Virus record (IMG/VR): IMGVR_UViG_3300023184_000025
Span: 62,001 to 126,000 of that record
Length of the DNA stretch: 64,000 bases
Reading direction: 5' to 3' (one strand)
Position 1 is the first letter of the stretch; each line of letters begins with the position of its first letter. This document shows positions 3,986 to 62,352 of this stretch, in pieces. Under the pieces are notes generated by a model. That model was not told the origin of the DNA. It did no database searches and saw only the letters and a list, made by a program, of their open reading frames with translations. Position numbers and translations under genes: made by a program.

Positions 3986-4038
3986 CCAAAATTTGTTGTG
4001 AAAAAACAACAAGAATTTAATAAAATTTACCCATTTTG

Positions 4039-4068
4039 TGTCAACGATCTTGTGAGCGCAGGCGTTAT
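4039..4068 (+). promoter_or_regulatory. Putative ECF-sigma promoter TGTCAAC-N17-CGTT
   Basis: Same architecture at 49991-50020. Confidence 0.5.
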
Positions 4069-4119
4069 TATATTATACAGAGATAATTCTGTATATTTTA
4101 ACTTTAAAGGAAATTTACC

Positions 4120-4335
4120 ATGAAATTAGTCGCAACATTAATCGCTTCAGCATTTGCTGTCACTGCTTTTGCCGCAGAACCTGCCAAAAAAGAAGAAAAG
4201 AAAGCTGATGCCAAGCCTGCTGTTACAGCGCCGGCCAAGCCAGCACCTGCCGCAACTGCGCCAGCAACGCCTGCAAAAAGTGAGCCTGCTAAGAAGGACG
4301 CACCAAAAGCAGACGCAAAGACAGCCGCGAAATAA
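4120..4335 (+). CDS. Secreted Ala/Lys/Pro-rich small protein
   Basis: Signal peptide ending AFA, low-complexity body, SD AAGGA. Confidence 0.75.
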   Translation: MKLVATLIASAFAVTAFAAEPAKKEEKKADAKPAVTAPAKPAPAATAPATPAKSEPAKKDAPKADAKTAAK

Positions 4336-4499
4336 TCTAGAAGAAGATGATGACTTTGAGATCAACGACGAAGTCACATTTGGACGTAATCGCAGGAGTT
4401 CACAGTTTGGAAAAGTTATACACGAGGACGAAGACCTTTCCGATTATGTCCTAAATAGATTGTACTTGGCCAGGATGTTGGCCTTAAAAAAACGTCAGG

Positions 4500-4531
4500 A
4501 AGTTTGGGGGTAAAATCCCAAACTTTTTTTT
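4500..4531 (+). terminator. Intrinsic terminator
   Basis: AAGTTTGGG/CCCAAACTT stem plus T run. Confidence 0.75.
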
Positions 4532-4561
4532 GACTATTTTCTCAGTAGAAACCATTAGAGA

Positions 4562-4576
4562 TATTGCAACGCAACA
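4562..4576. promoter_or_regulatory. PhaR-like operator TATTGC-N3-GCAACA
   Basis: Near-identical to the palindrome at 11334-11348; abuts TAAATA 4577-4582. Confidence 0.5.
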
Positions 4577-4624
4577 TAAATACTCCGTAGAAACCACGAG
4601 TACCTACTGACAAGGACACATATA

Positions 4625-4801
4625 ATGACATATCTATCAAACAAAATGCTGTCTATCTTGGAACGTTTAAGTGAAATGTTCCCTGGTAGTAGTTACCAAA
4701 GCCGCTTGGAACAATATCTAAGCACCAAAGGCATTACCGATGCCGCACAGTTGGAAAATTATATCCGACATTTTAATTCTCAAAAGGAAAACTATCTATG
4801 A
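4625..4801 (+). CDS. Small protein, DUF3563-like (58 aa, not in the ORF track)
   Basis: SD AAGGA; RLEQYLSTKGITDAAQLENYIRHF. Confidence 0.6.
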   Translation: MTYLSNKMLSILERLSEMFPGSSYQSRLEQYLSTKGITDAAQLENYIRHFNSQKENYL

Positions 4802-4896
4802 AAAAAATCGTCAACACACTTTACAAAGGCTTAATTAACTGGGCCGAAACTATTGCCGCTTATCGCAACAGTAATGCCAGTAAACACTACTATTAA
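4798..4896 (+). CDS. 32-aa peptide
   Basis: ATGA overlap, SD AAGGA; MKKIVNTLYKGLINWAETIAAYRNSNASKHYY. Confidence 0.55.
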   Translation: MKKIVNTLYKGLINWAETIAAYRNSNASKHYY

Positions 4897-4897
4897 A

Positions 4898-4996
4898 ATG
4901 AACTTTATAGACACCGTAATAATGTTGCTACGCTGGAAGCAACAAGGGTGGGAAGTACATCCTGTTATTGATGATGACTTTACTGGCTGGTTTTAA
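4898..4996 (+). CDS. 32-aa peptide
   Basis: Starts 1 nt after the previous stop; MNFIDTVIMLLRWKQQGWEVHPVIDDDFTGWF. Confidence 0.45.
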   Translation: MNFIDTVIMLLRWKQQGWEVHPVIDDDFTGWF

Positions 4997-4997
4997 G

Positions 4998-5450
4998 TTA
5001 CAACAACCAACCTAGATCTAGACGCTGATGTATCCAGGGATAAATTGGCGTTTCAAAATCCATATACCAAATGCCATTCCAGCCCAGGTAATTGGCATGT
5101 ACGATCTTATCCTTGTTTCCTAGCCAATCGTCAGGATATGTTGGCTGATATTTAGAATAAACTTTGAAATCTGATTTGATATTTTGAAATCTAACAGAAT
5201 CAATAATCACTGCCATGTCTAGTTCTGGCGGCTGTATTTCTTTATAATTTTTATTAAAAAACTCAATGCTTAGTCTATGCTGTCCAGGATACACCGACTG
5301 TACAATTAGAAAATCCTGGCTATGTGAATCTGTAACTGTCCATAACACATGATCATCAAGCTTGATAGTATATTCAGGAACAGTTGTTACCATTCTTGTA
5401 CTGACTGAAAGATTAATTTTGATATCGTTTTTTTGCATAACCGTACTCAT
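4998..5450 (-). CDS. Hypothetical protein linked to radical SAM gene
   Basis: Overlaps the 3' end of the radical SAM gene. Confidence 0.65.
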   Translation of the reverse strand: MSTVMQKNDIKINLSVSTRMVTTVPEYTIKLDDHVLWTVTDSHSQDFLIVQSVYPGQHRLSIEFFNKNYKEIQPPELDMAVIIDSVRFQNIKSDFKVYSKYQPTYPDDWLGNKDKIVHANYLGWNGIWYMDFETPIYPWIHQRLDLGWLL

Positions 5451-6720
5451 CTAAAAATTCTGCTAGTTCTGGCACAAACTCACGCAAGTCATGTTCTCGC
5501 AATTGATCAAACTTAGTACAATAGTCAGTTAGCTCTTGTCTAACAGTTTCTATATTGACTCCAGTCTGGTACAACAATCCTATAACCATTTGTGCATGAT
5601 GGGATATTGATTCTACCACTCTTGATTGATTTCTAACATTAATATCGTGCAGTATATCTTTATCTTTAAGAATAAATCTTGACAGTCTTGATTTAATTAT
5701 TTCCTTAGCTGAATTAGGAAGGTAACAGGGTCTAAAAAACTCTGGACGATGCAGGACATTACTGTCAATAATAATAGAATGTTCTAGACAAAAATCTAAA
5801 AGTTTATCGTAATGCATCAGACTTAACAGTTGAGGAACTGAGCGTAATACTGTGCTAAATTTTTCATTGGTGCAAGCCAGATATTGTCGAATGTTGTCGA
5901 CAATCTTGTTAGTTTTTCCTGGGTATCGAATATAATCATTGCTAATATCAAGGTTTTCAATGCTGATTTCAATCTGCACAGATTTAAATTTTTCTAATTG
6001 TGTCATCAACTCAGGGTCGTAGATAGTTCCATTGGTTACAAAAGTCAGATGAAAATCTGTGTGATTGTTATTGCACAAGAACGTTATCAAATCTCTAAAT
6101 CGCTTGTGGTACAACGGTTCTCCGCCCATGACATGCAGACAAATAATATCATTGTTGTTTAACAAGTGATCACAGAATTTTCCCCAGGTGGGTGTATCGG
6201 TCCAGTCGTGTTTGATCGGAATACTGGAATCTCTTAGACCAATTTTATTCAAATCAGCGGCTAAGAGTGTGCTGTTAAATCCATCACACATTACGCAGGC
6301 CATATTGCAAATATTACTAAAACTGATATGATAAAATCTTGGACTAGATTTATCAGCATTAATAATTTTCCAAACAGGACTTTCTTCGGCGCTTTGTTGG
6401 AAATCCTGTCCCGGAAATATAGCAGCCTGCAGATTTCTGCGACTACGAAATGTTACTTCACTATGCTGATCTTCTTTATAACAACGATGACATCGGGCAA
6501 CAGAGTCTCCGTTGAGTATGTTTTTTCTTGCTGATTGAACTGATTTTGAATTTGAAAAATATTCATCCACAGTCATTAAATTAATATGCTCATTGCCCGG
6601 TAAGTCAGCACGATCAGCAAAATGACAAAAGTTCATTGTGCCGTCAGAATTGATCCTGACTTCAGTCCAGGGACTGATACAAAAAGTTTGTTGGTTGATA
6701 TTCAATTTATTTTGTTCCAT
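5413..6720 (-). CDS. Radical SAM protein with N-terminal SPASM/twitch-like Cys cluster
   Basis: CNMACVMC, GGEP, TNG motifs. Confidence 0.85.
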   Translation of the reverse strand: MEQNKLNINQQTFCISPWTEVRINSDGTMNFCHFADRADLPGNEHINLMTVDEYFSNSKSVQSARKNILNGDSVARCHRCYKEDQHSEVTFRSRRNLQAAIFPGQDFQQSAEESPVWKIINADKSSPRFYHISFSNICNMACVMCDGFNSTLLAADLNKIGLRDSSIPIKHDWTDTPTWGKFCDHLLNNNDIICLHVMGGEPLYHKRFRDLITFLCNNNHTDFHLTFVTNGTIYDPELMTQLEKFKSVQIEISIENLDISNDYIRYPGKTNKIVDNIRQYLACTNEKFSTVLRSVPQLLSLMHYDKLLDFCLEHSIIIDSNVLHRPEFFRPCYLPNSAKEIIKSRLSRFILKDKDILHDINVRNQSRVVESISHHAQMVIGLLYQTGVNIETVRQELTDYCTKFDQLREHDLREFVPELAEFLDEYGYAKKRYQN

Positions 6721-6748
6721 TGTTGTTACTTATCGTGGTAAATATAGG

Positions 6749-8326
6749 ATGCGAGACTTAATCAATATTCTAGATAACTTTGTGTTTGAAGCACGTGGTC
6801 TTAGTGCCAGAAATCCCGGCGATGAGTTTGTACGTACCGGATCCACTGATGATAAGGACAAAATTGTTTTTCAAGGCATGCAATTTTACCCAGATCCGGG
6901 AAAATATCCCAGTTACGAAGATATGATCGCGGCGTTTGATCAAGTACAACGATCAATCAAACACCCAATTGAAAAAATTAATCAACCGTCTGCACGTACA
7001 CTGGCATTTGCAATTGCACAATTTGATACTGCTGTTGGTCGTAGATATCTTGCCAAGTTTGCCTCGGACATTAAACCAGTACGCACCCAAAATACCTTTT
7101 TTCAAACAGTAGATATCCCTGGCGGATTTAATCAAGTTAGTGCAAGAGGCAGCAAAGAAAAAGTTGGATACAAGCCCAGCGATGTGTTAACTAATTTTAA
7201 GAGCCAAACTGCGGCCGGCATACTAGAACAAATTCGATCCAAGTTTGGCGCGGACAGCACTGAGTATCAGGCGGCAGCAATTTTTAACAAGTCCACACAG
7301 TTCCCAATTGTGGTTCCTGCAGGTAACATGGACTTTGGGGCTTTTCGAGATTATTTCTGCGAGATGTTACAACCTATTGCACTGATGAATAGCATGCCAG
7401 TCAAGGGCAACGCCGGTAAGGCCGCTGAACTATTTCTGGGTGGCAACTACAGTGATTGTGTTGTGTCATTCAATGAAGGTGTGGGCGGAGAACTCTATGA
7501 CAGTTTATTAGTAGCGCCAAATGGCAAACAGATTAAACTATCTAGTAAGGGCGCAAAAGGTGCAATGGCATCCAGTGTTAACTTACTCAAGAGTGTGCGT
7601 GAACTTGAAGCGGCAGGGATGACACAGTTTACTGAGCAGTATGCAGATGTAATTGATATCTTGGAAACCATCAACAAAGGCAATCACGACTCGGGACCAT
7701 TGAACCTTGCCATACAACTTGACATGATTGACAAAACTGAAGCACAACAGGTAATGACTTTAAAACAGTACGCTGGTGTAAAGGGCTTTGATATTGACAA
7801 TACCGACCTTACTGACAATCTCAAAGCAATCTACAAAGAACGCAAAGCTGATGATCCATCTAAAATTGTTCCGTTAAATCACCTGGTATCTAGCATTGCC
7901 TACAAAGTCTGTAACGAAATTAATTTAAAAACAAATTTCAGTGAAGCAGGTGCAGATATTCTCAACAACTCTGCGTTTGTTCAAATGTACACTGAAGCTA
8001 AAAAAGGCAAAGAAGAATTTATCATCACTGGGTTTACCACAGTATGGCCCAGCAAGTTGTTTACCGAAGTAACATTAGAAGCACAAAAGAGTTATTCAAG
8101 TACTTCAAGTTCAGGAGGCAAGCTGGTGTTTAATATCAACAAAGAACCTAGAGTAGAACTCAACGTAGAAAAGTCAGCTACTACAAATGCGCCAGGCGCA
8201 AACAAAGCCGGGGAGTTGGTAGACTATATTCCACCACGCAGTGATATCAAAGCGGCGGGTGATGTTGGCACTCCAAAGCACCCTGACCAGGCATTGGGTC
8301 GTAAGCGTCGCCCTGGTGGCCGTTAA
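6749..8326 (+). CDS. Large hypothetical protein, probably head-packaged; possible degenerate PD-(D/E)xK domain
   Basis: TAAATA 4 nt upstream of MRDLINIL; YDS...IKLSSKG motif. Confidence 0.6.
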   Translation: MRDLINILDNFVFEARGLSARNPGDEFVRTGSTDDKDKIVFQGMQFYPDPGKYPSYEDMIAAFDQVQRSIKHPIEKINQPSARTLAFAIAQFDTAVGRRYLAKFASDIKPVRTQNTFFQTVDIPGGFNQVSARGSKEKVGYKPSDVLTNFKSQTAAGILEQIRSKFGADSTEYQAAAIFNKSTQFPIVVPAGNMDFGAFRDYFCEMLQPIALMNSMPVKGNAGKAAELFLGGNYSDCVVSFNEGVGGELYDSLLVAPNGKQIKLSSKGAKGAMASSVNLLKSVRELEAAGMTQFTEQYADVIDILETINKGNHDSGPLNLAIQLDMIDKTEAQQVMTLKQYAGVKGFDIDNTDLTDNLKAIYKERKADDPSKIVPLNHLVSSIAYKVCNEINLKTNFSEAGADILNNSAFVQMYTEAKKGKEEFIITGFTTVWPSKLFTEVTLEAQKSYSSTSSSGGKLVFNINKEPRVELNVEKSATTNAPGANKAGELVDYIPPRSDIKAAGDVGTPKHPDQALGRKRRPGGR

Positions 8327-8898
8327 CGTGCTAGACGGCTGATACTATCGCAGATACCAAATGCAAGTGCTTCTTCTGCACTGAGCCAAACATCATGTGG
8401 TGGCAACAAGCATTGCTTGAGTTTTTCTTCATCAAGTCCAGTTGCCTGCTTATAAAGATTAACCATGCGTTTTTGGCACAGCTCAAATTCTTTAATTGTG
8501 GCAAACAATTCATGCGCTTTGCCTTCGGATCCCCAGCTGAACTGGTGACTTAGAATACTGGTATTTGGAGTTAGAAGTCTACGTCCAGGTGAGCCAGCTA
8601 AAAAGATCAATAAACCTGCTGAAGAAATTTGTCCTAACCCAACTGTTTTAATTGGGATATTGCTACTTTGCATAACATCAATTAGGGCAAAGGCAGATTC
8701 AACTTCTCCACCCTCGCTACAAATCATCAACAGCAATTCTTTTTTCTTTTTCTTAACAACATAGTTGGCATGCAAAATCCACTCGACTACTGGCTTAACG
8801 CTTTCGGTGTCAACTGGACCCATAAAGGCATACATACCAGCTTCAAGTAAGCTTTGTCCAGGGCTAATGTAATCTTCATCATCTTTAATTTGTGTCAT
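8323..8898 (-). CDS. clpP: ClpP-like protease subunit
   Basis: ICSEGG, GQISSAG, ILSHQ, DVWLSAEEA motifs. Confidence 0.85.
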   Translation of the reverse strand: MTQIKDDEDYISPGQSLLEAGMYAFMGPVDTESVKPVVEWILHANYVVKKKKKELLLMICSEGGEVESAFALIDVMQSSNIPIKTVGLGQISSAGLLIFLAGSPGRRLLTPNTSILSHQFSWGSEGKAHELFATIKEFELCQKRMVNLYKQATGLDEEKLKQCLLPPHDVWLSAEEALAFGICDSISRLAR

Positions 8899-8918
8899 GT
8901 AATTTCGCTCAAAAGAAA

Positions 8919-8962
8919 AGGGCTAGCTAAAAGTGTGTTATAATATACTTTTAGCTAACCCT
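8919..8962. other. Long intergenic inverted repeat
   Basis: AGGGCTAGCTAAAAGTGT / ATACTTTTAGCTAACCCT. Confidence 0.6.
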
Positions 8963-8978
8963 AGTACTTATGGTGAAC

Positions 8979-9566
8979 TTACTCGGGCTTTTGAGTTTCT
9001 TTCCGTTCCATCTCTTTAAAGCTTTCACGACTACGGGTTTCGGCTAGTCTACGCTGGTTACGAGCATCGGTCACTTTCTGGATTCCGTTTGCTTCCCCAA
9101 TTGGTAGTGCAATTAAAACATAAGCTCTAAAACGCCCATTTTCAGAAATAACCTTGATACCTTCTGCGGCAACTTCTACGCCCGAAATATCAACACCTGG
9201 GCAATAGGTTTTGATTGCCAGTTCGCTGAACTCAGTACTGGCATTCTCACTGTCTGTTCGGTAAATCTTGCTTTGCTGGTCTACACGACCGCCTGCACTC
9301 ATACAAATTTTGCCAAATGCAACAGTTTTAGCCTTGGTAACTGCCATGCTATAGTCTGGGCTCACAGCCGTACCATTCTGATATACAGCAGATTTAGAAA
9401 CTGGTAGATTAGTCATCCATTTGGGTGCTTTGTCAATGGCCTGTTCAGCCGCTTTTTCTCTACGCTGTTCATCATCATAGGCCCTGCGTTCGTAAGGGTC
9501 TTTGGGAGACGAACTACATGCCGCCAAAATAACCACAATGGGTGCCAATAAAATAAGTTTTTTCAT
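8979..9566 (-). CDS. Lipoprotein (LPP20-like)
   Basis: Lipobox LAAC; P.W motif. Confidence 0.7.
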   Translation of the reverse strand: MKKLILLAPIVVILAACSSSPKDPYERRAYDDEQRREKAAEQAIDKAPKWMTNLPVSKSAVYQNGTAVSPDYSMAVTKAKTVAFGKICMSAGGRVDQQSKIYRTDSENASTEFSELAIKTYCPGVDISGVEVAAEGIKVISENGRFRAYVLIALPIGEANGIQKVTDARNQRRLAETRSRESFKEMERKETQKPE

Positions 9567-9575
9567 AATTTTTCC

Positions 9576-9698
9576 TTAACGAGTTTTAATCCATTCGCCG
9601 GCTTTTTTAAGATCTTCGCCGGCACCACCTACTGCCCCGCCCATGGTTCCACAGGCTGTGAGCATCGAGACAAGTAAAATAACAACTGCTTTTTTCAT
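9576..9698 (-). CDS. Entericidin EcnA/B-like small lipoprotein (40 aa, not in the ORF track)
   Basis: LTAC-GTMGGAVGGAGEDLKKAGE. Confidence 0.65.
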   Translation of the reverse strand: MKKAVVILLVSMLTACGTMGGAVGGAGEDLKKAGEWIKTR

Positions 9699-9823
9699 TT
9701 TGCCATCTCCTGACTTTGAGTTTTAACCGAGTCCACTCCTTTGTCAATCATACGAGCAATACCGCTGAATCCAACAGTAGCAAGTATTAGACCAAAAATG
9801 GTTCCAATAACAAACATCTTCAT
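9695..9823 (-). CDS. Small single-TM protein (42 aa, not in the ORF track)
   Basis: SD AGGAGG; MKMFVIGTIFGLILATVGFSG... Confidence 0.65.
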   Translation of the reverse strand: MKMFVIGTIFGLILATVGFSGIARMIDKGVDSVKTQSQEMAK

Positions 9824-9855
9824 TATAGCCTCCTGGCGTTAATTAACATAGCACA

Positions 9856-9884
9856 ATTATACATAAAATGCAATATCTAGTCAA
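9856..9884 (-). promoter_or_regulatory. Early promoter TTGACT-N17-TATAAT
   Basis: Consensus hexamers. Confidence 0.75.
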
Positions 9885-9885
9885 G

Positions 9886-10443
9886 TCAAAATTTGTCTGT
9901 AACTACCCATTTGCCTTCTCGGATTTGGCAAATAACACCCTGGTATGTTCGGATATCTCTAGCAACAAAGTTAGATTCCACAAACCATTTACATTCGGTT
10001 CCATTATGATAAAAACGGTTTGGGTATTCTGGATGGGGCCTAAATTGACCAACATCACCAACTGTACCAACTTGTGTGCTGGACAGGACGGACAATGTTG
10101 GTTGGTCCTTGCAGATCAGAGTCTTTTCACTAGTGGTTTGATTTTTGCCCACACGTTCTCTAACCGAATCGTCGGCTCTAGAAACTGCAATAGCACAGGC
10201 TTCATTTTCGGGACGGTCGCCGGACCAATTGTACTCTCCAAAAGCAGTATGCCAATTTACCCCTACTCTGGCCCTAAAGTCAACTAGACATTTTTTGCCA
10301 GTTGCAGTAGCAACCACATCTCTCCTGATCTGACTGCGTTCTGCAATAACCACAGAAGTTTTGGTAACGGAACGATCTTGTAGTACACATTCTTGAGCAC
10401 CAACAGCCGCTGGTATCAGTAAAAGTATTAATGTTTTTTTCAT
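9886..10443 (-). CDS. Secreted Cys-containing protein
   Basis: Signal peptide, six Cys. Confidence 0.7.
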   Translation of the reverse strand: MKKTLILLLIPAAVGAQECVLQDRSVTKTSVVIAERSQIRRDVVATATGKKCLVDFRARVGVNWHTAFGEYNWSGDRPENEACAIAVSRADDSVRERVGKNQTTSEKTLICKDQPTLSVLSSTQVGTVGDVGQFRPHPEYPNRFYHNGTECKWFVESNFVARDIRTYQGVICQIREGKWVVTDKF

Positions 10444-10781
10444 GAGCAATCTCTTGTCAAGTGCAGTAGATGTTGATTAATCAACCAGTTTGTGCGACCA
10501 CTGTGAATACTTTGTCGCTGATAGTGTTCTTCATTGTCTGTCCAACGGCTCCAGGGTTGTGTTAAATTTCCCACACCTGCTAGCATACGTTCATCTCTTC
10601 CAGAACGCATGCTCTGCAGAAACTTAATTTGCTGTTCTTTAATACGACAATTAATTTGAAAGCTTTCCAAATCAATAGCATGTATCGGCTGTTGTACAGC
10701 ACAGCCACTAAACAGGCTGACAAATATAACGGATGCGCCAAATGCGGCTACGAACCTGGCGTTGAAATTCTGCAGAATCAT
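10440..10781 (-). CDS. Putative lipoprotein
   Basis: FSGC lipobox-like. Confidence 0.6.
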   Translation of the reverse strand: MILQNFNARFVAAFGASVIFVSLFSGCAVQQPIHAIDLESFQINCRIKEQQIKFLQSMRSGRDERMLAGVGNLTQPWSRWTDNEEHYQRQSIHSGRTNWLINQHLLHLTRDCS

Positions 10782-10923
10782 TTTGGGTACTCTGAGTTTC
10801 TAACCATCTGATTATGGCATGTCGATTGGCACAATCATCTGGAATGAGTGTGACGTCAACAGGCGGCCGGGTAGATGTACACCCTGTAATTAATAAAATG
10901 GATAAAAGAAAAATCCTGTTCAT
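10708..10923 (-). CDS. Putative small lipoprotein
   Basis: ITGC lipobox; ATG 6 nt after a -10 box. Confidence 0.6.
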   Translation of the reverse strand: MNRIFLLSILLITGCTSTRPPVDVTLIPDDCANRHAIIRWLETQSTQNDSAEFQRQVRSRIWRIRYICQPV

Positions 10924-10929
10924 GTAGCT

Positions 10930-10958
10930 ATTATACACAAACAGGATTTATTGGTCAA
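10930..10958 (-). promoter_or_regulatory. Early promoter TTGACC-N17-TATAAT
   Basis: Repeated promoter family. Confidence 0.85.
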
Positions 10959-10975
10959 CTAGACCGATAGCCAAA

Positions 10976-11251
10976 TTACTTCTTGGCTGTGGTATTTTGG
11001 TAAGCTTTCATAACGCCTTCACCAAATTTGGTGTAGTCAAATTTCATTGCTTCCTGGCTGGCTTTTACCATTTCTTGTGCCACTGTGGTAAACGTATCTA
11101 CTCCGACCTTGGCGGCTTTTTTGGTGTAGTCTGCTTGGGCGTCAATGAACTTGACCATTGAGTCTTTAACAGTTTCGTTTTGAATGAATGTGTTAACAAA
11201 AGTTTTTTTACCGGTTTGAACGGTGTCGATTAGTGCGTCTGCTGTGAACAT
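10976..11251 (-). CDS. Phasin-like amphipathic helical protein
   Basis: All-helical Ala/Thr/Lys-rich sequence; PhaR-like box upstream. Confidence 0.5.
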   Translation of the reverse strand: MFTADALIDTVQTGKKTFVNTFIQNETVKDSMVKFIDAQADYTKKAAKVGVDTFTTVAQEMVKASQEAMKFDYTKFGEGVMKAYQNTTAKK

Positions 11252-11257
11252 AGTGTT

Positions 11258-11309
11258 CTCCTTTAATTAAGCGAGTTTACGATTTAGGACCCGGCCTATC
11301 CAGCGTCCT
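11258..11309 (-). promoter_or_regulatory. ROSE-like RNA thermometer leader
   Basis: CUC-G-CUU pairs with SD AAGGAG with a bulged G; upstream hairpin. Confidence 0.55.
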
Positions 11310-11317
11310 TAGTCTAT

Positions 11318-11348
11318 ATTATATATGATAAATTGTTGCGTTGCAACA
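11318..11348 (-). promoter_or_regulatory. Sigma70 promoter (TTGCAA-N17-TATAAT) with PhaR-like palindrome TGTTGC-N3-GCAACA over the -35
   Basis: Perfect palindrome at 11334-11348. Confidence 0.6.
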
Positions 11349-11460
11349 TTTTTACGTGTTATTTTGGTATGTTTGGATAAATTGATAGTGTTATATGGAA
11401 GTGTACTAATAAAATACCATTATCTTAAAGATCATAGTAAATAACACATAGGAGAATCAA

Positions 11461-11754
11461 ATGATTACATTTATTAAAAAACTTTTTGGGCTAGAAAAAC
11501 CCTCAGTTACAGAAGCACCGTATAAGGTAGAGACACCGACATCAGTTGTAACACCACTGACGGTGGGGTCTGAAGGAGTTGCACCAGCGGTTAAACCCAA
11601 AGCTGTTGTGGTTGAAAACACCGAAATTATACCCGTGAGCTTTTCTGACATACCAGTAATGGTTGCTACAACAAAAACACCTGCTAAAAGAGGACCCGCA
11701 AAACCAAAAGTTGCTAAAACGCCGCGAACACCTACAAAACCTGCGGCAAAATAA
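11461..11754 (+). CDS. Protein with N-terminal amphipathic helix and histone-H1-like Lys/Pro/Ala tail
   Basis: TAAATA 11438-11443, SD AGGAG. Confidence 0.7.
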   Translation: MITFIKKLFGLEKPSVTEAPYKVETPTSVVTPLTVGSEGVAPAVKPKAVVVENTEIIPVSFSDIPVMVATTKTPAKRGPAKPKVAKTPRTPTKPAAK

Positions 11755-11763
11755 ACAAGGTCA

Positions 11764-12471
11764 CTAAGTCTTTGCGCCGGAGAAATAATGTGCGGCGATC
11801 ACCGACTGTACAAGGCTGTCTAGGCTGTTAACAATGGGTATGCCATCCTCAATGGAAATGTTGATACTCAAGGGCAATTCGGTACAGCCTAGAACCACAG
11901 CTTGTGCGCCACGATCGATCAAGCTATGAATTACTTTCATTAGCAACAACTGAGATTCTGTAATCTTGCCGGCCTTGACCAGGTCAATAGCAGGTTGTAC
12001 AAAAAAGTCCATTTCAGCACGATCTGGAACTATACATCTCCAGCCTTGTTGCTCTAGTCTTTCTTGATATAAACCATATTCTATTGTGCCTTGTGTGCCC
12101 ATGATGCCAATGGTGGTATTGTCAAGCTGTAATTTACGGAGCTCGTCGGCTATGCTTTCTACTATGTGTAAGATGGGCACACCCATTTTGACCATGTCAT
12201 TGTACCAAAAATGTGCTGAGTTACAAGGAATAACAATACTGTCACACCCTAGTGTTTTTAATGCCTGTATACCTTGTAACATCAACAGTAATGGCCGATT
12301 GTCGCCGGCCTGTATACTTGTACTACGATCAGGAATTCTTGGCTCATTCCACAACACAAAAGGTATGTGTTCTTGATCGCAAGTGGCCGGCGACTGCCTG
12401 ATTAATCTAGTTACAAACTCTGCTGACGCTGCCGGTCCCATGCCTCCTAGTATGCCAAGTTTTTTTACCAT
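11764..12471 (-). CDS. Aspartate/glutamate racemase
   Basis: GILGGMGP, PCNSAH and GCTELP (both catalytic Cys present). Confidence 0.9.
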   Translation of the reverse strand: MVKKLGILGGMGPAASAEFVTRLIRQSPATCDQEHIPFVLWNEPRIPDRSTSIQAGDNRPLLLMLQGIQALKTLGCDSIVIPCNSAHFWYNDMVKMGVPILHIVESIADELRKLQLDNTTIGIMGTQGTIEYGLYQERLEQQGWRCIVPDRAEMDFFVQPAIDLVKAGKITESQLLLMKVIHSLIDRGAQAVVLGCTELPLSINISIEDGIPIVNSLDSLVQSVIAAHYFSGAKT

Positions 12472-12530
12472 ATTAAAATTAATACTATTAGTATGACTAT
12501 GATGCCAGCAATGACTCCTGGTAGTCTCAT
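12465..12530 (-). CDS. 21-aa single-TM peptide (not in the ORF track)
   Basis: MRLPGVIAGIIVILIVLILIW; overlaps both neighbours. Confidence 0.55.
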   Translation of the reverse strand: MRLPGVIAGIIVILIVLILIW

Positions 12531-13132
12531 TTTTTATCAAACAGTAAACTTGACGCAACAATTAGTACAGTCTGTGCTAACTCTACTTCTGTTGGTTGCT
12601 CTTTCCAACCTACACTTATTTGTCCTATAAACAATCCAGGGTCTGCTGGCACGCTTATGCGACACATGTATGTTACTCCATAGTTTTTATAAGTAAATCC
12701 AATATAACTTTGTGGTGTTAGATACGGACCGCATGGAATTTTGCCTGACATTAATCCAATTACATCTTCGTTGTTGCTGTGATTCTTAGTAAGCAACCCC
12801 ACATTGGTTCCATCATGGACTGTGTCATGTCCTGAGCCTCGTGTAGTTAGATATACTAATTTTCTGGTGTTCAGTAATGTGTTAACTTGGAATACAGCCA
12901 CAAGCTCTGCATCTGTATTCTTTAGTATAAAATTGACTGCTTGTTCATATTTGCCGTTCATCTTGGGCAAGGCCTGTTGAGCACGATAACTTGCCATGAA
13001 GTTATCTTTTTCAGTATAGGCTACCCATCCTAAAAAAGTGAATAGGCAAAGGAACACAACTGTAAATAGGCGAAATGGACTTTCGCCTATAAACTTTAAC
13101 AGTTCAAGCAGTAACTCTTTAAGTTTGTCCAC
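12527..13132 (-). CDS. T4 holin T-like protein (N-terminal TM plus periplasmic GAF-like domain)
   Basis: Size, topology and pattern similarity to T4 T, aligned by eye from memory. Confidence 0.5.
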   Translation of the reverse strand: MDKLKELLLELLKFIGESPFRLFTVVFLCLFTFLGWVAYTEKDNFMASYRAQQALPKMNGKYEQAVNFILKNTDAELVAVFQVNTLLNTRKLVYLTTRGSGHDTVHDGTNVGLLTKNHSNNEDVIGLMSGKIPCGPYLTPQSYIGFTYKNYGVTYMCRISVPADPGLFIGQISVGWKEQPTEVELAQTVLIVASSLLFDKK

Positions 13133-14396
13133 CGGCAGTTACCTCTTTGTCGCATACAAATGCTGTGACTGCTACGTTGCCGTGTACATGACTTGCTGTG
13201 CGAATCATATCCATTAATGGATCAACTGCTATCAACAATACCAATACAGCTTCGCTTGGTAGTTTTAACAAATCACAAACAACTGCTACAGTAGCAACTG
13301 TTAAGATACCTGTTGTACCTGCACTTGCTAATCCGGCTAAAATACTACCAAACAATACAACTGCTAAACCGGTAAGTCCTAGAGGAGCATCATAGATGTT
13401 GGCAATGAATACTGTAGCAATAGCATAGTAAACAATGCTACCAATACGGTTAACAGTGAAACTTAGTGGAACTGTTAGTTCAACTCCACCTTTGTCAAAA
13501 TGTAGTTTATGTAAGGCTTCTTGTGCGTATGGAATACAAGCCAATGAACTACGTGAACTAATAGCAACAATTAATGTTTCTTTAGTTTCACGGATAACAG
13601 TGGCAAGGCTTAATCCACTACGTGCCCAAATCACAGCAGTACCTGCGGCAACTACTAATAGTCCGCCAATGAACTGTTGGAACACAAAGTCAAACATTGT
13701 TAAGAAAATACCAACTCCAACTTTACCAACTTGACTGCTGATCATTGCCAACAATGCAAATGGTAGGAAGTAGTTTAAGAATTTGAAAATACTAATACTT
13801 GCTTGTTGAACACTCTTCAGTACTTCAACCAACATACGTTGTCCTTCTGTTTTCAAGTGACCCAGTGCAACTCCAAATATCAAACAGAAGATAACAATCT
13901 TCAAACTTTCACCATTGTTCAGTGTGGCAAAAATGTTTTCTGGGATAAACTTCTCTGCCATTTTACCAGCACTGACTGCGGGTGCCGTTGACATTGGTTC
14001 GTGAAGGGTAATGTTTAATTCAGTTCCGGTATCTTTGTTGTTGACTAGTACACCAAATTCTGTTTTCTTCTCAGGAGTCATTTCTGTACCTGTTACTAGT
14101 ACAGTTCCTACACCAATAACAGCAGCCAAGAACATACTGCCAACAAAGCCCACAATAATTTTGCGAATTAATTCCTGACTACCTTCTTTTTGTAATAGCC
14201 CAATGATACCAACTAGAATAGTTGCTAACAAAAATGGTAGTACAACTACCTTTAGCAAACTAATATAGATACTACCAATACTGTCAAGACCCATACTAAA
14301 CTCAGGTGCGTAAACGCCGCCTAAAATACCTGCGATAATTGATCCTAAAATAGTCCAAGGACTAGTCAGGAAACTTTTTAAATGTGTTGTTGTCAT
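13119..14396 (-). CDS. Dicarboxylate/amino acid:cation symporter (DAACS, GltP family)
   Basis: IPENIF, SSRSS hairpin-1 motif, DMIRT TM8 motif. Confidence 0.9.
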   Translation of the reverse strand: MTTTHLKSFLTSPWTILGSIIAGILGGVYAPEFSMGLDSIGSIYISLLKVVVLPFLLATILVGIIGLLQKEGSQELIRKIIVGFVGSMFLAAVIGVGTVLVTGTEMTPEKKTEFGVLVNNKDTGTELNITLHEPMSTAPAVSAGKMAEKFIPENIFATLNNGESLKIVIFCLIFGVALGHLKTEGQRMLVEVLKSVQQASISIFKFLNYFLPFALLAMISSQVGKVGVGIFLTMFDFVFQQFIGGLLVVAAGTAVIWARSGLSLATVIRETKETLIVAISSRSSLACIPYAQEALHKLHFDKGGVELTVPLSFTVNRIGSIVYYAIATVFIANIYDAPLGLTGLAVVLFGSILAGLASAGTTGILTVATVAVVCDLLKLPSEAVLVLLIAVDPLMDMIRTASHVHGNVAVTAFVCDKEVTAGGQT

Positions 14397-35626: not shown

Positions 35627-36121
35627 TTAACTTCCTGTAGAAAGGATAAGTGTACGTGGATCATCTTTGGCAATTTTAAAACCTTCAATAAACATGTGGT
35701 GTTCATCACCGCTGTCACGGATACAGGCATTGGCCGCAACATACAATGCCGACCAGGTCAGTCCATTGATCTCAGAAATCACTGTGTCGTCGCCCCAATG
35801 ATCTTTGTATAACACACGATTCACACCTTCAAAGGGATGACGATCGCTGAGATTGTTTGCGTCGTAGACACTCCACACAGCTGACAATCCTAGTTGATTT
35901 TGAACATCACTGTAATGCTCTTGTTTAAGTTCAAACGACTTGCTGTCTTGTTCGTATGCACTGGTAAGACCTTTGCGAATGTCTGTTGCGGCACGGGCCA
36001 GCTTGATGTACAGTTCAGGTTTGAGTACTTCTTCAAGCTGTGCCCTGACCTGATCCAACTCCCACAAGGCGTTGTGTATAGTCTTGAATTCTTCAGCAGT
36101 GATTGTAGGGCTACAGTTCAT
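35627..36121 (-). CDS. Hypothetical protein
   Basis: 164-aa ORF with SD AAGGA. Confidence 0.7.
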   Translation of the reverse strand: MNCSPTITAEEFKTIHNALWELDQVRAQLEEVLKPELYIKLARAATDIRKGLTSAYEQDSKSFELKQEHYSDVQNQLGLSAVWSVYDANNLSDRHPFEGVNRVLYKDHWGDDTVISEINGLTWSALYVAANACIRDSGDEHHMFIEGFKIAKDDPRTLILSTGS

Positions 36122-42542: not shown

Positions 42543-44861
42543 TTAAATCTTACAACTGTCACAATCATCCATGGATTGATCAACAGTAGAGTCAATACTT
42601 TCTAACAGTATTGACTTTCCTTGCGACAGTCTTTCTGCGTCAATTTCTCCGCTGCCATCGTATGTATTGAAATAGTATAGCTGTTTACCACCATACTTGA
42701 AGAACATGATAAGATGCTTGAGCATTTCGCTCATTGGAATCTTTTCATCTTCAAAGAATTGTGGATTATAACTTGTGTTAACACTAATACCCTGATCAAT
42801 ATATTTTTGCAGAACTGCCATAATTTTCAAATATCCCTCTGGGCTTTTTTGACTCCATAGCAATTCATATTTGTTTTTTAGTCGACGATACTCTGGCACA
42901 ACCTGCTTGAGCACACCATCTTTACTTTGTTTGATAGAAACATAACTACGAGGTGGTTCAACCCCGTTGGTACTGTTACTAATCTGCGCACTGGTTTCTG
43001 CTGGCATTAGAGCCATTAATGTAGAATTGCGTATACCATGCTCGCGCAGTTGACTACGCAGACCTTCCCAGTTAACATAGTCAACATGCGGTACTAATTC
43101 ATCAACTTCATGTTTGTATGTGTCAATGGGGAGAATGCCATCACCGTATTTGGTTTCATTGTTTTTAGGACATGCTCCTCTTTCTTTGGCAAGATCTGCG
43201 CTGGCTTTGATTAGATAATAACTCCAGTACTGTGCCCACTTGTCAACCACCGGCAATGCCCGTGGATCAGTATAGGTTAGATCATTTTTTGCTAACCAGT
43301 AGGCAAAATTGATAATACCAACGCCCAACGGTCTACGATTCTGTGTAGCAAGTTCAGCGGCAATAACAGGATAACTCTGATAGGATAACAAATTGTCTAG
43401 TCCTCGAACAGCAAGTGTGCAGGCTTTTTCCATGTCTTCAGGGTCCTTGAACACTCCCCAGTTGATAGCACTCAGTGTACATAGTGCAATTTCGCCTTCG
43501 GCGTCATGGATATCTTTAAGGGGTTTAGTCGGTAAATCAATTTCACAGCAAAGATTGCTTTGTTTAATTGGTGCAAGTTCAGGTTTAAAACTGCTGTGAC
43601 TGTTGGCATGATCAACATTTTGCAAGTACACACGACCTGTGTCTTTACGTTCTTGCATGAATGCAGTAAACAGATCAATTGCCTTGACTTTCTTTTTACG
43701 CAACTTGGTATTACGCTCGGCTGTTTCGTATAGTTCTCTGAACCGATCTACATCTGCATAAAATGCATCAAACATTTCAGGAACATCGTGTGGACTAAAC
43801 AAAGTGATGTCGCCGCCAGTGAGTAATCGTTCGTACATGACCTTGTTGAACTGTACTCCGTAGTCCATGTGACGAACACGATTGTCTTCAGTGCCTTTAT
43901 TGTTTTTAAGAACCAACAGATCCTCAACTTCTAGATGCCATACTGGATAATACAATGTTGCCGCTCCATTGCGAACCCCACCTTGACTACAACTGCGTGT
44001 GCCAGCCTGGAACATCTTATAAAAAGGAATAACACCGGTATGATATGCATCACCGTTACGAATAGGACTACCAATGGCACGAATACGGCCGGCGCCTATG
44101 CCGATGCCAGCCTTTTGACTTACATATTTTACAATACTAGATGTTGTGGCATTGATGCTGTCAAGACTATCGTCAGTTTCAATTAGCACACAGCTACTGA
44201 ATTGACGTTGCGGTGTTCTAACTCCAGCCATCACCGGAGTAGGCAAACTAATTTGATGTGTGCTAATTGCATCGTAGTAATCTTTGACCCACATCATCCG
44301 TGCTTCTCGAGGATATTTACTAAACAATGTTGCCGCAATAAGCAGGTATGCGATCTGGGGTGTTTCTAATATCTCTTTGGTTACACGATTTTGTACAAGA
44401 TACTTGCCGCGGAACTGTTCCATGGCTGCATAGGTCAACTGGTCATCACGATCATGTTTAATGTATCCATTTAAACGTTCCCACTCCTCGGAACTATAAT
44501 CATTTATCAACTCACGGTCGTAGAATCCACGAGCTACGTTTTGTTCCACTAATTGGAAAAGATTGCATGGTTCATATTTGCCATAGACTTCTTTACGCAG
44601 ATGATAGTTGATTAAACGACCAGCAACATATTGGTAATTTGGTGTTTCTTCACTGATTAAATCAGCGGCGCTTTTGATCAGGGTTTCTTGGATGTTTGCA
44701 GTTGGGATTCCATTATAAAACTGTAAATGGCTTTTGATTTCTAGTTCACTAGCACTGACTCCTGTGATTCCTTCTGTTGCCCAAAAAACTACTTTATGCA
44801 TTTTTTCGAGATTGAGTGGTTCTCGAGTACCATCTCTTTTTGTTACTTGTATTTGTGTCAT
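42543..44861 (-). CDS. nrdA: Ribonucleotide reductase class Ia alpha subunit
   Basis: ATP cone, SSC, SNLCCEI, YY, C-terminal CDSC. Confidence 0.97.
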   Translation of the reverse strand: MTQIQVTKRDGTREPLNLEKMHKVVFWATEGITGVSASELEIKSHLQFYNGIPTANIQETLIKSAADLISEETPNYQYVAGRLINYHLRKEVYGKYEPCNLFQLVEQNVARGFYDRELINDYSSEEWERLNGYIKHDRDDQLTYAAMEQFRGKYLVQNRVTKEILETPQIAYLLIAATLFSKYPREARMMWVKDYYDAISTHQISLPTPVMAGVRTPQRQFSSCVLIETDDSLDSINATTSSIVKYVSQKAGIGIGAGRIRAIGSPIRNGDAYHTGVIPFYKMFQAGTRSCSQGGVRNGAATLYYPVWHLEVEDLLVLKNNKGTEDNRVRHMDYGVQFNKVMYERLLTGGDITLFSPHDVPEMFDAFYADVDRFRELYETAERNTKLRKKKVKAIDLFTAFMQERKDTGRVYLQNVDHANSHSSFKPELAPIKQSNLCCEIDLPTKPLKDIHDAEGEIALCTLSAINWGVFKDPEDMEKACTLAVRGLDNLLSYQSYPVIAAELATQNRRPLGVGIINFAYWLAKNDLTYTDPRALPVVDKWAQYWSYYLIKASADLAKERGACPKNNETKYGDGILPIDTYKHEVDELVPHVDYVNWEGLRSQLREHGIRNSTLMALMPAETSAQISNSTNGVEPPRSYVSIKQSKDGVLKQVVPEYRRLKNKYELLWSQKSPEGYLKIMAVLQKYIDQGISVNTSYNPQFFEDEKIPMSEMLKHLIMFFKYGGKQLYYFNTYDGSGEIDAERLSQGKSILLESIDSTVDQSMDDCDSCKI

Positions 44862-61564: not shown

Positions 61565-62352
61565 CGGTACTGTATTAAATCAATGTTTCCGTCAGATATA
61601 CCAAATGATAATCTTAGATAAGGATGATACCCCTCAACGTTGATGCCTAATCTTTCAACTGCATGAATAAAGTTTATTTCTGACACAGTATTACTTGTTT
61701 TTAAATCTTCAAAGTCTACATCGTACCATTCAACAGTATTGGCTGTGGCATCTGACGATCCTTGTACTTGAAGTGTGCCAGTAAAGTCCACTGGATCAAT
61801 TTGGAATGTAGTAATACGTGTACCATTTGTGGTAATTGTACTGGTGTAATGGATAGAGCTGTCAGGGGCTTGGCTTGGGATAGTTAATTCTTGGCTGGCA
61901 ACAAAAGCTGGAAATACGCTGTCTACAATATCAATATTCCCACGAGCGCCTGCATAGTCGTCTGTGAATACTGCTTGATTTAAAACGCCGGACGTAATTT
62001 CTAAACTCCAACTAGCGGGCTGTGCTTGAAAATATGTTGTCTCTTCGGCAGTGACAGTTACTTTAGCTCTACCTGTTGGTGCATTAAGTGTTACAAGCTC
62101 TTTGGCATATAACAAATTTTCTCCGTCTTGACTAATCATACGAAACGTAAACGTTGCGCCTGTGATGTTTACAGGTTTTTGGTCCTGGTTTAGAAATTGG
62201 AATAAAATAACATTATCCACTCCTAAATTTAATTTTAAGTCTTTTGCGTACACTGGTTGCCACCTTCTATCAAAAGTTGAGCCAATGCCTGACGTGTCAA
62301 TCAGAATTACCTGTTGGATTTGCTGATATAAATAGGCAGTGGTTGAATACAT
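61561..62352 (-). CDS. Putative virion structural protein (BppU-like beta domain)
   Basis: TAAATA 62369-62374; F.NQDQKPVNITG motif. Confidence 0.55.
   Translation of the reverse strand: MYSTTAYLYQQIQQVILIDTSGIGSTFDRRWQPVYAKDLKLNLGVDNVILFQFLNQDQKPVNITGATFTFRMISQDGENLLYAKELVTLNAPTGRAKVTVTAEETTYFQAQPASWSLEITSGVLNQAVFTDDYAGARGNIDIVDSVFPAFVASQELTIPSQAPDSSIHYTSTITTNGTRITTFQIDPVDFTGTLQVQGSSDATANTVEWYDVDFEDLKTSNTVSEINFIHAVERLGINVEGYHPYLRLSFGISDGNIDLIQYR

Follow-up and report, generated by a model that had tools for sequence, protein, structure and literature searches.

PhaR-type operator palindromes upstream of small-protein genes in a freshwater jumbo phage

PhaR (AniA) is the bacterial repressor that senses PHB storage granules, and the PhaR-phaP circuit of Ralstonia eutropha/Cupriavidus necator and Sinorhizobium meliloti is the closest described counterpart of the locus analyzed here. 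The published PhaR consensus is YTKNTGCRNYGCANMAR for R. eutropha, where up to 3 mismatches were accepted (PMC12849132), and WNWD2NYGCRNYGCRNH2WNW for S. meliloti (PMC12542648). The phage locus shares with this circuit a TGC-RNY-GCA dyad with a conserved flanking T/A at position 7, placed at or around the -35, -10 or TSS of a gene for a small, predicted amphipathic helical protein, and the phage promoter layout mirrors that of Polynucleobacter phaP promoters. It differs in that the putative operator lies in a virus in which no phaR, phaC or phaZ-type genes were found (no PHB_acc_N protein and no PHB depolymerase match), and in that the protein encoded downstream is half the length of cellular phasins and falls below the family thresholds. 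Phage auxiliary genes controlled by host nutrient regulators, such as cyanophage genes with Pho boxes or NtcA sites, likewise place a host regulator's operator before a viral gene so that expression follows the physiological state of the host; here the signal would be carbon-storage (PHB granule) status sensed through PhaR, for which no published precedent was found in the library searched. PhaM of R. eutropha and PhaF of Pseudomonas putida are granule-nucleoid tethers with histone-H1-like tails, and the product of the divergent neighboring gene, with its homologs, ends in a comparable tail and is encoded next to a phasin-like gene, although its N-terminal part shows no detectable similarity to any family. 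DUF3563 (PF12086) comprises small proteins of large-genome Burkholderiaceae, and the first protein of the micropeptide operon shares with them a length of 58 aa and a hydrophobic N-terminal helix followed by a YL..(S/A)..D...LE motif, without reaching the Pfam model.

The analyzed DNA (hereafter the window) comprised 64,000 nucleotides of the IMG/VR virus record IMGVR_UViG_3300023184_000025 (positions 62,001 to 126,000), part of a 345-kb phage genome. A sequence-only reading had placed two near-identical palindromes, one over the -35 of a phasin-like gene and one beside the promoter of three coupled small ORFs with a flanking 10-bp direct repeat, and this observation was confirmed: both palindromes, the repeat and the three ORFs are located as described, except that no sigma-70 consensus promoter was found next to the second site (box 1) on the + strand. 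The site at the 91-aa gene (box 2) is TGTTGCGTTGCAACA, a perfect 6-N3-6 palindrome, and box 1 is a 14 of 15 match. Read in the direction of the downstream gene, both contain the same 13-mer, TTGCAACGCAACA. In the window the palindrome pattern with up to 1 mismatch gave 2 matches against 0.41 expected, and 6 of 100 shuffles reached 2, so the window alone is only suggestive. In the whole genome the 13-mer with up to 1 mismatch had two more matches, both inside long ORFs, leaving these two sites as the only intergenic copies; the motif is not enriched genome-wide (2 strict sites against 1.1 expected). Features are listed in Table 1.

Table 1. Coordinates of the features in the window (position 1 is its first nucleotide).
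Feature	Position	Strand	Description
Upstream gene	4154-4513		Closed by the terminator-like hairpin
Terminator-like hairpin and T run	4507..4528	+	Hairpin at 4507-4519; box 1 lies just after it
Upstream partial leader duplicate	4541..4560	+	CTCAGTAGAAACCATTAGAG; contains the first GTAGAAACCA copy
10-bp direct repeat	4545 and 4587		GTAGAAACCA; no other exact copy in the window
Box 1 (PhaR-type operator, putative)	4562..4576	+	TATTGCAACGCAACA; 49 nt upstream of the P0003 start codon
5' leader element	4587..4607	+	GTAGAAAC core, invariant in the 26 aligned leaders; downstream complement CTAC at 4604-4607
P0003	4625..4801	+	58-aa protein, first gene of the operon, possibly DUF3563-like
P0004	4798..4896	+	32-aa ORF; start overlaps the P0003 stop (ATGA)
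P0005	4898..4996	+	32-aa ORF
Terminator-like hairpin	10911..10949	-	16-bp stem followed by a T run, after P0001
P0001	10976..11251	-	91-aa protein, predicted all-helical and amphipathic ('phasin-like'); AGGAGA Shine-Dalgarno at 11257-11262
Conserved stem-loop	11286..11309	-	AAGGACGCUGGAUAGGCCGGGUCCU; predicted 5' end of the P0001 mRNA
Predicted P0001 promoter	11318..11346	-	Sigma-70 type: TTGCAA (-35), 17-nt spacer, TATAAT (-10)
Box 2 (PhaR-type operator, putative)	11334..11348	-	TGTTGCAACGCAACA on the gene strand; centered near -30, overlapping the -35 and spacer of the P0001 promoter
P0002	11461..11754	+	Divergently transcribed 97-aa protein with a K/P/A/T-rich basic C-terminal tail, TTKTPAKRGPAKPKVAKTPRTPTKPAAK

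The evidence that box 2 exceeds chance is comparative. The P0001 promoter scored 10 of 12, and homologous promoters carry TATAAT or an extended TGTTACAAT -10. Upstream of P0001 homologs from diverged phages the palindrome recurred in 15 of 25 distinct promoters under the strict pattern, with several more in degenerate form. The arms ATGTTGC and GCAACAT are kept while the 3-nt spacer varies and is almost always R-N-Y (AAC, GGT, AGT, ACT, ACC, ATT, GCC, GTT), which gives a 7-N1-7 dyad at a fixed distance from the -10. At the level of sequence conservation this marks a protein-binding operator. Some P0001 promoters instead carry a dyad with N4 spacing (TGC-N4-GCA) or no dyad.

The boxes were then compared with the published consensus and with the genomes of a candidate host genus. 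Box 2 matches 16 of 17 positions of the R. eutropha consensus and box 1 matches 14 of 17, within the accepted tolerance. Polynucleobacter is a candidate host on the basis of MAG binning (a relative's contig is binned in a Polynucleobacter MAG) and motif similarity only; another relative's contig is binned in a Haliscomenobacter MAG with no PhaR match, and two phage genes of cellular type, a symporter and a racemase, are only 22-28% identical to Polynucleobacter proteins. PhaR (PF07879) was present in 28 of 31 Polynucleobacter genomes, with 3-5 Phasin_2 matches per genome, and the PhaR core pattern occurred 7-11 times per genome against 0-1 for the control pattern. Of 14 phasin genes examined, 9 have a TGCRNYGCA box within about 110 nt upstream. 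These boxes include GATATTGCAACGCAATATAAT and AAATGTTGCGTTGCCGCAAATAAT, which are close to the phage promoters beyond the core, and GATATTGCAACGCAA at box 1 is identical over 15 nt, flank included, to the box at the main phasin gene of one Polynucleobacter genome (G031). The phage uses sigma-70 promoters and AGGAG ribosome-binding sites.

The interpretation offered by the sequence-only reading, that the phage reads host carbon-storage status through PhaR sites and manipulates PHA granules, was partly supported. The description of P0001 as phasin-like is only weakly supported. P0001 itself hit no phasin model (Phasin_2, PF09361; TIGR01841). In its family, 15 of 91 members gave sub-threshold Phasin_2 hits in a mostly consistent register; in four of the five hits inspected, residues 26-71 aligned to profile positions 48-95, with a best score of 22.6 bits against a cut-off of 24.9. 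TIGR01841 phasin was the top recurrent NCBIfam model among family members. Similarity to phasins had been named beforehand as a check, and hhalign of the family against Polynucleobacter phasins was not significant; fold searches gave nothing significant. The AF2 model has three helices with a mean pLDDT of 70, and the mean hydrophobic moment was 0.96 against 0.63 in shuffles, a value reached by 0.2% of shuffles. P0001 has more than 1200 homologous clusters and is 81% and 76% identical between phages whose RNR is 49% and 48% identical.

P0002, which had been likened to the PhaF/PhaM tails, gave no family match in Pfam or PHROGs, and thus no recognizable N-terminal PHA- or PhaC-binding domain. 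Its 28-residue tail is histone-H1-like in composition (7 K, 6 P, 6 T, 5 A and 2 R). A divergent small gene with a conserved N-terminus and an AAKP/PAKK-type tail is present in most related loci, although some homologs begin with a hydrophobic, membrane-type helix.

The favored interpretation, held with moderate confidence, is that the palindromes are operators for the host's PHB-responsive repressor PhaR. In this view, PhaR bound at box 2, which covers the -35 and spacer of a strong sigma-70-type promoter, would block transcription of P0001 in cells without PHB granules, whereas in granule-rich cells PhaR would be titrated onto the polymer and P0001 would be made in quantity; the 5' hairpin and strong Shine-Dalgarno site fit high expression. 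P0001 would probably act at the granule surface as a phasin does, P0002 may link it to DNA, and in this phage lineage box 1 would place the P0003-P0005 operon under the same signal. The phage would then read its host's carbon-storage state. The sites, their conservation, their fit to the PhaR consensus and the presence of the same boxes at host-type phasin genes were demonstrated computationally, whereas PhaR binding and its release by PHB, repression, granule association, DNA binding by P0002 and the identity of the host are inferred. A further-reaching possibility, considered less likely than not, is that a widespread group of freshwater jumbo phages uses PhaR as an infection-time switch and encodes its own carbonosome module, an abundant mini-phasin plus a basic-tailed tether, that would take over or mobilize the host's storage granules; this would be a virus-encoded granule-remodeling system governed by a host repressor's operator. 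PHB is a major carbon and energy reserve of planktonic and soil bacteria, and whether viruses sense or exploit it is essentially unexplored. The locus offers a short, conserved operator and two small proteins more conserved than ribonucleotide reductase across the phage group, and relatives of the 91-aa gene are represented in lake and river RNA libraries, which together give a directly testable link between phage gene expression and host carbon storage. Regulator boxes shared with host promoters also provide a host-prediction clue for a large family of uncultured jumbo phages.

An alternative, considered doubtful, is that the dyad is a real operator bound by a phage-encoded regulator or another host regulator, with the PhaR fit reflecting convergence or coincidence. 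The host assignment is only a candidate one, a jumbo phage encodes many uncharacterized proteins that could include a regulator, and the N4 dyad (TGTGCGGTCGCA), which replaces the N3 box in 29 of 43 distinct P0003 promoters and in some P0001 promoters, was not seen in the Polynucleobacter phasin promoters examined, hinting at a binder with other rules. Against this stand the fit of the N3 box to the experimentally derived PhaR consensus in every constrained position, its match, including flanking bases, to boxes at phasin genes of a candidate host, and the absence of a detectable PhaR-like DNA-binding domain in the phage.

A second alternative, also unlikely, is that box 1 is a non-functional by-product of a promoter rearrangement and only box 2 is an operator, so that there is no two-gene regulon. 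Box 1 sits between two copies of the leader element, the upstream copy has lost its promoter to a terminator, no consensus -10 or -35 accompanies the box, and two phages (G095 and G096) have a PhaR-type box at P0001 but none at P0003. However, the arrangement is kept in relatives whose P0001 is 93% identical (L100, L106 and L109), independent lineages (L036, L057, and in degenerate form L075, L101 and L108) carry N3 boxes at P0003 just before the -10 or overlapping it, and box 1 shares the 15-nt identity with a Polynucleobacter box described above. That the palindromes are chance matches, RNA hairpins or terminators is very unlikely: although perfect 6-N3-6 palindromes are common (209 in the genome), the shuffle result above is only suggestive and a pattern scan flagged box 2 as terminator-like, the arm sequences are conserved rather than co-varying, the palindrome is weak as RNA (-4.2 kcal/mol, z = -1.2), no gene ends there and its position relative to the -10 is fixed across phages.

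The neighboring stem-loop, by contrast, does co-vary, with 97% of cells paired and compensatory changes in 5 of 9 pairs, far above the slid controls. Its free energy was -12.4 kcal/mol (z = -2.4), and three metatranscriptome contigs of relatives end at 11309. At the micropeptide operon, most relatives carry the N4 dyad or none, so the 'mini-regulon' holds for this lineage and a few others. The upstream GTAGAAACCA copy is not part of the operator but a lineage-specific duplication of the conserved leader element, present only in the window, L034, L100, L106 and L109; the predicted stability of the leader in this phage is weak (-3.4 kcal/mol). P0003 was found in 335 IMG/VR loci and more than 2100 clusters. 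Its proposed DUF3563 similarity rests on a protein atlas lead (score 0.89, 184 shared features) and is not significant: P0003 did not reach the Pfam model, the best relative scored 13.4 bits against a cut-off of 26.9, hhalign gave P = 0.13, and DUF3563 was not found in 5 Polynucleobacter genomes. The position of P0004 is kept in most loci but its sequence is conserved only in some, at 53-69%, and P0005 is 50-81% identical in a subset of the loci.

The IMG/VR virus record that contains the window (bases 62001-126000) is 345,154 bp long, has a G+C content of 40% and is estimated to be 99% complete. It encodes ribonucleotide reductase, an ATP-dependent DNA ligase, a DnaB-type helicase and a ClpP-type protease, among others, and is therefore a jumbo phage. 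The phage is present in lake samples. Megablast of positions 4000-12000 and tblastn of the 91-aa protein P0001 against 50,697 phage records found no cultured relative. PHROGs has no family for P0001, for its divergent neighbor P0002 or for the micropeptide-operon proteins P0003, P0004 and P0005, and Rfam has no match in 4300-11900. Literature searches found no report of phage phasins or of these phages.

Positions of the two palindromes (boxes 1 and 2) and of other features of the window
Feature	Position	Strand	Description
Box 1	4562-4576		TATTGC-AAC-GCAACA, upstream of the P0003 operon
Box 2	11334-11348		TGTTGC-GTT-GCAACA, perfect palindrome, upstream of P0001
Repeat GTAGAAACCA	4545 and 4587		exact copies; box 1 lies between them
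P0003	4625-4801		58 aa, followed by two ORFs of 32 aa each
ORF	4998-5450	-	150 aa
Radical-SAM/SPASM enzyme	5413-6720	-	adjacent to the micropeptide operon
ClpP-like or head-maturation-protease-like protein	8323-8898	-	191 aa; phrog_94, E 2e-23
P0001	10976-11251		91 aa
Stem-loop	11286-11309	-	predicted 5' end of the P0001 mRNA, loop AUAGG
P0002	11461-11754		divergent from P0001
Asp/Glu racemase-family protein	11764-12561	-	cellular-type metabolic gene
Sodium:dicarboxylate symporter-family protein	13119-14396	-	cellular-type transport gene
Ribonucleotide reductase, large subunit	42543-44861

The sequence-only reading had located both palindromes, the 10-bp repeat and three coupled ORFs of 58, 32 and 32 aa, and these observations held at every coordinate. 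Read towards the gene that each site precedes, both boxes contain the same 13-mer TTGCAACGCAACA, which with up to one mismatch occurs only twice more in the whole genome, both times inside long ORFs. Statistics from the window alone were only suggestive (0.41 matches expected; two matches in 6 of 100 shuffles), and the PhaR pattern is not enriched in the phage genome as a whole. Box 2 overlaps the -35 hexamer and spacer of TTGCAA-17-TATAAT. The three ORFs are tightly coupled, but no consensus promoter was detectable next to box 1, where the same reading had placed one. Its interpretation, a PhaR-controlled mini-regulon acting on PHA granules, was only partly supported, as set out below.

P0001 has more than 1200 homologous 90%-identity clusters and 29 IMG/VR loci, many on contigs of 300-350 kb. 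Its identity is 81% and 76% between this phage and two relatives whose ribonucleotide reductase is only 49% and 48% identical, and it is thus among the most constrained genes of the group. P0001 and P0003 are 71-81% identical between phages whose ribonucleotide reductase large subunit is 48-49% identical, which points to unusually strong constraint or to exchange among phages. Upstream of the P0001 homologs, the dyad ATGTTGC-N3-GCAACAT recurs about 10-11 nt before a TATAAT or TGTTACAAT -10, with arms fixed in sequence and a spacer that varies but is almost always purine-N-pyrimidine. Fixed arms with a free center are the signature of a dimeric DNA-binding protein, not of an RNA hairpin, and as RNA the palindrome is weak. 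A few lineages have no dyad, or a variant with a 4-nt spacer. Many relatives (among loci L009-L033 of the P0001 homologs) carry another palindrome, TTAGTGA-N4-5-TCACTAA, about 20-30 nt upstream of the PhaR-type box; this phage has only two such sites, neither near the locus.

The neighboring stem-loop in the 5' UTR behaves in the opposite way, with 97% of cells paired, compensatory changes at 5 of 9 pairs and a free energy of -12.4 kcal/mol. It is found at the same position in loci L006-L033, has a conserved loop and is followed by a conserved GUAAACUCGCUUAA and a strong Shine-Dalgarno site. Covariation support is strong, and the element, which is unique in this genome, may stabilize the mRNA or serve as a translational operator. 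Contigs from four lake, river and marine-labelled metatranscriptomes, derived from relatives at 80-99% likeness, cover the P0001 coding region and 5' UTR. Three of these contigs end at 11309, the first base of the hairpin and 9 nt after the -10, while two others run on to about 11353. This fits the predicted start site but is weak evidence, because the contigs carry no strand information, DNA carry-over is possible, and only the conserved part of the locus can recruit relatives.

The boxes were compared with the published operators of PhaR. For R. eutropha the consensus is YTKNTGCRNYGCANMAR, described as degenerate palindromes with a single central base in which positions 1-4 and 7 from the center are conserved (PMC12849132), and for S. 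meliloti it is WNWD2NYGCRNYGCRNH2WNW, confirmed there by EMSA and mutation (PMC12542648). Box 2 fits 16 of 17 positions and box 1 fits 14 of 17, and the R-N-Y spacer rule seen in the phages is exactly the consensus rule. The phage itself has no PHB_acc_N domain and no PHB_depo_C.

Two relatives of the P0001 locus lie on contigs binned in MAGs, one Polynucleobacter and one Haliscomenobacter, and neither MAG shows PhaR. In the genus Polynucleobacter, 28 of 31 genomes have PhaR. Five genomes have 3-5 Phasin_2 matches each, and the R. eutropha core pattern occurs 7-11 times per genome, against 0-1 for the reversed control. Of 14 phasin genes examined, 9 have a TGCRNYGCA box within about 110 nt upstream, and some of these boxes match the phage beyond the core: host GATATTGCAACGCAATATAAT compares with window GATATTGCAACGCAACATAAAT, and host AAATGTTGCGTTGCCGCAAATAAT with phage AAATGTTGCGCTGCCGCATAAATAAT. 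PhaR-type boxes (for example G031:C1:84684-84698 and 36053-36067) are also conserved about 50 nt upstream of a lepA-like gene in all five of Polynucleobacter genomes G031, G024, G007, G021 and G012, and lie upstream of a LivH-like permease gene in two genomes, which hints at a wider PhaR regulon in this genus. The sigma-70-type promoters and AGGAG ribosome-binding sites of the phage would, by inference from established promoter biology, fit a proteobacterial host better than a Bacteroidota host. The dicarboxylate symporter and the racemase gave no host signal, being only 22-28% identical to Polynucleobacter proteins, and there are no tRNA genes in the window. No P0003 homolog was found in the 31 Polynucleobacter genomes, and no DUF3563 in 5 of them. 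Polynucleobacter is therefore a lead, not a result.

P0001, which the sequence-only reading had called phasin-like, hits no Pfam, NCBIfam or PHROG model. A profile search found 343 representatives at the 50%-identity level, all small proteins. Among 91 diverse members, Phasin_2 is by far the most recurrent Pfam hit, in 15 members and with a best score of 22.6 bits against a cut-off of 24.9; in four of the five hits inspected, residues 26-71 align to profile positions 48-95. TIGR01841 phasin is the top NCBIfam hit, in 7 members. The AF2 model has three helices with a pLDDT of 70, and the sequence is significantly amphipathic. In contrast, hhalign of the P0001 family against Polynucleobacter phasins was not significant, and an HMM built from those phasins gave only noise-level scores on the family. 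A profile search of PDB sequences and Foldseek against PDB and AFDB clusters gave nothing significant, and two weak 'phasin domain' rows among generic helical hits carry no weight. Cluster look-ups returned no informative names, and the name 'ATP phosphoribosyltransferase', which many JGI records give to this protein, is not backed by any domain hit. 'Phasin-like' is therefore reasonable as a description of how the protein may work, but family membership is not shown.

P0002 ends in TTKTPAKRGPAKPKVAKTPRTPTKPAAK. In most related loci the gene divergent from P0001 encodes an 80-135-aa protein with a conserved N-terminus (M-x-x-x-I-K/F-x-F/W-F ... APYKVE) and an AAKP/PAKK-type tail, although a minority instead begin with a hydrophobic helix. 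The tail resembles those of PhaM and PhaF, as the sequence-only reading had suggested, but the N-terminus matches nothing in Pfam or PHROGs.

P0003 is even more widespread, with 335 IMG/VR loci and more than 2100 clusters at 80-93% identity. A small ORF overlapping its stop codon is kept in position, and P0005 is conserved in a subset of loci. The leader contains the 8-mer GTAGAAAC, invariant in the 26 aligned leaders and preceded by TAAATACTCA, and most loci also have a downstream CUAC complement. The downstream copy of the repeat (4587) belongs to this leader, whereas the upstream copy (4545) belongs to a partial duplicate found only in the window lineage, whose promoter has been replaced by the terminator of the preceding gene. 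The resemblance of P0003 to DUF3563, a family that the sequence-only reading had named for a check, consists of equal length, the same layout and a protein atlas score of 0.89, and stays below significance. The possibility that the micropeptides are RiPP precursors for the radical-SAM/SPASM enzyme was considered, since this enzyme and the 150-aa ORF converge on the operon in an arrangement that recalls RiPP clusters, but the enzyme neighbors the operon only in the window lineage, so the idea has no comparative support.

Among 43 distinct P0003 upstream regions, 4 carry a strict N3 box (the window lineage plus related loci L036 and L057), and L075, L101 and L108 carry degenerate N3 boxes. A different dyad with a 4-nt spacer, TGTGC-GGTC-GCA (N4; TGTGCGGTCGCA), lies between the -35 and -10 in 29, including L035, L041, L046, L053 and L060, and the rest have none. 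Two complete relatives with a PhaR-type box at P0001 have none at P0003. The inferred two-promoter regulon thus applies to this lineage but is not general. The N4 core TGCGGTCGCA also occurs, inverted, in some P0001 promoters (L017, L028, L032, L114). This dyad replaces the N3 box in many relatives, at both genes and in either orientation. It was not seen at the Polynucleobacter phasin genes examined.

In the most likely explanation, rated about as likely as not, host PhaR would repress P0001, and in this lineage the P0003 operon too, until it is titrated by PHB granules; P0001 would then accumulate and act at the granule surface, with P0002 as a basic-tailed partner. The sites, their recurrence and their fit to the PhaR consensus were established from sequence, whereas PhaR binding, repression, granule association and the host are inferred. 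That the site is a genuine conserved operator is very probable, that PhaR is its binder is somewhat more likely than not, and granule association of P0001 is a tentative proposal. It is unlikely, but the foremost rival, that another regulator binds the dyad. It is slightly less likely that box 1 is non-functional, a reading that concerns only that part of the model. Chance or an RNA hairpin is very improbable. Host regulator boxes in phage promoters are a known principle; a PhaR-type box in a phage, controlling a phasin-like gene, was not found in the literature library searched. The two operator-bearing loci are separated by, among others, the gene for the ClpP-like or head-maturation-protease-like protein.
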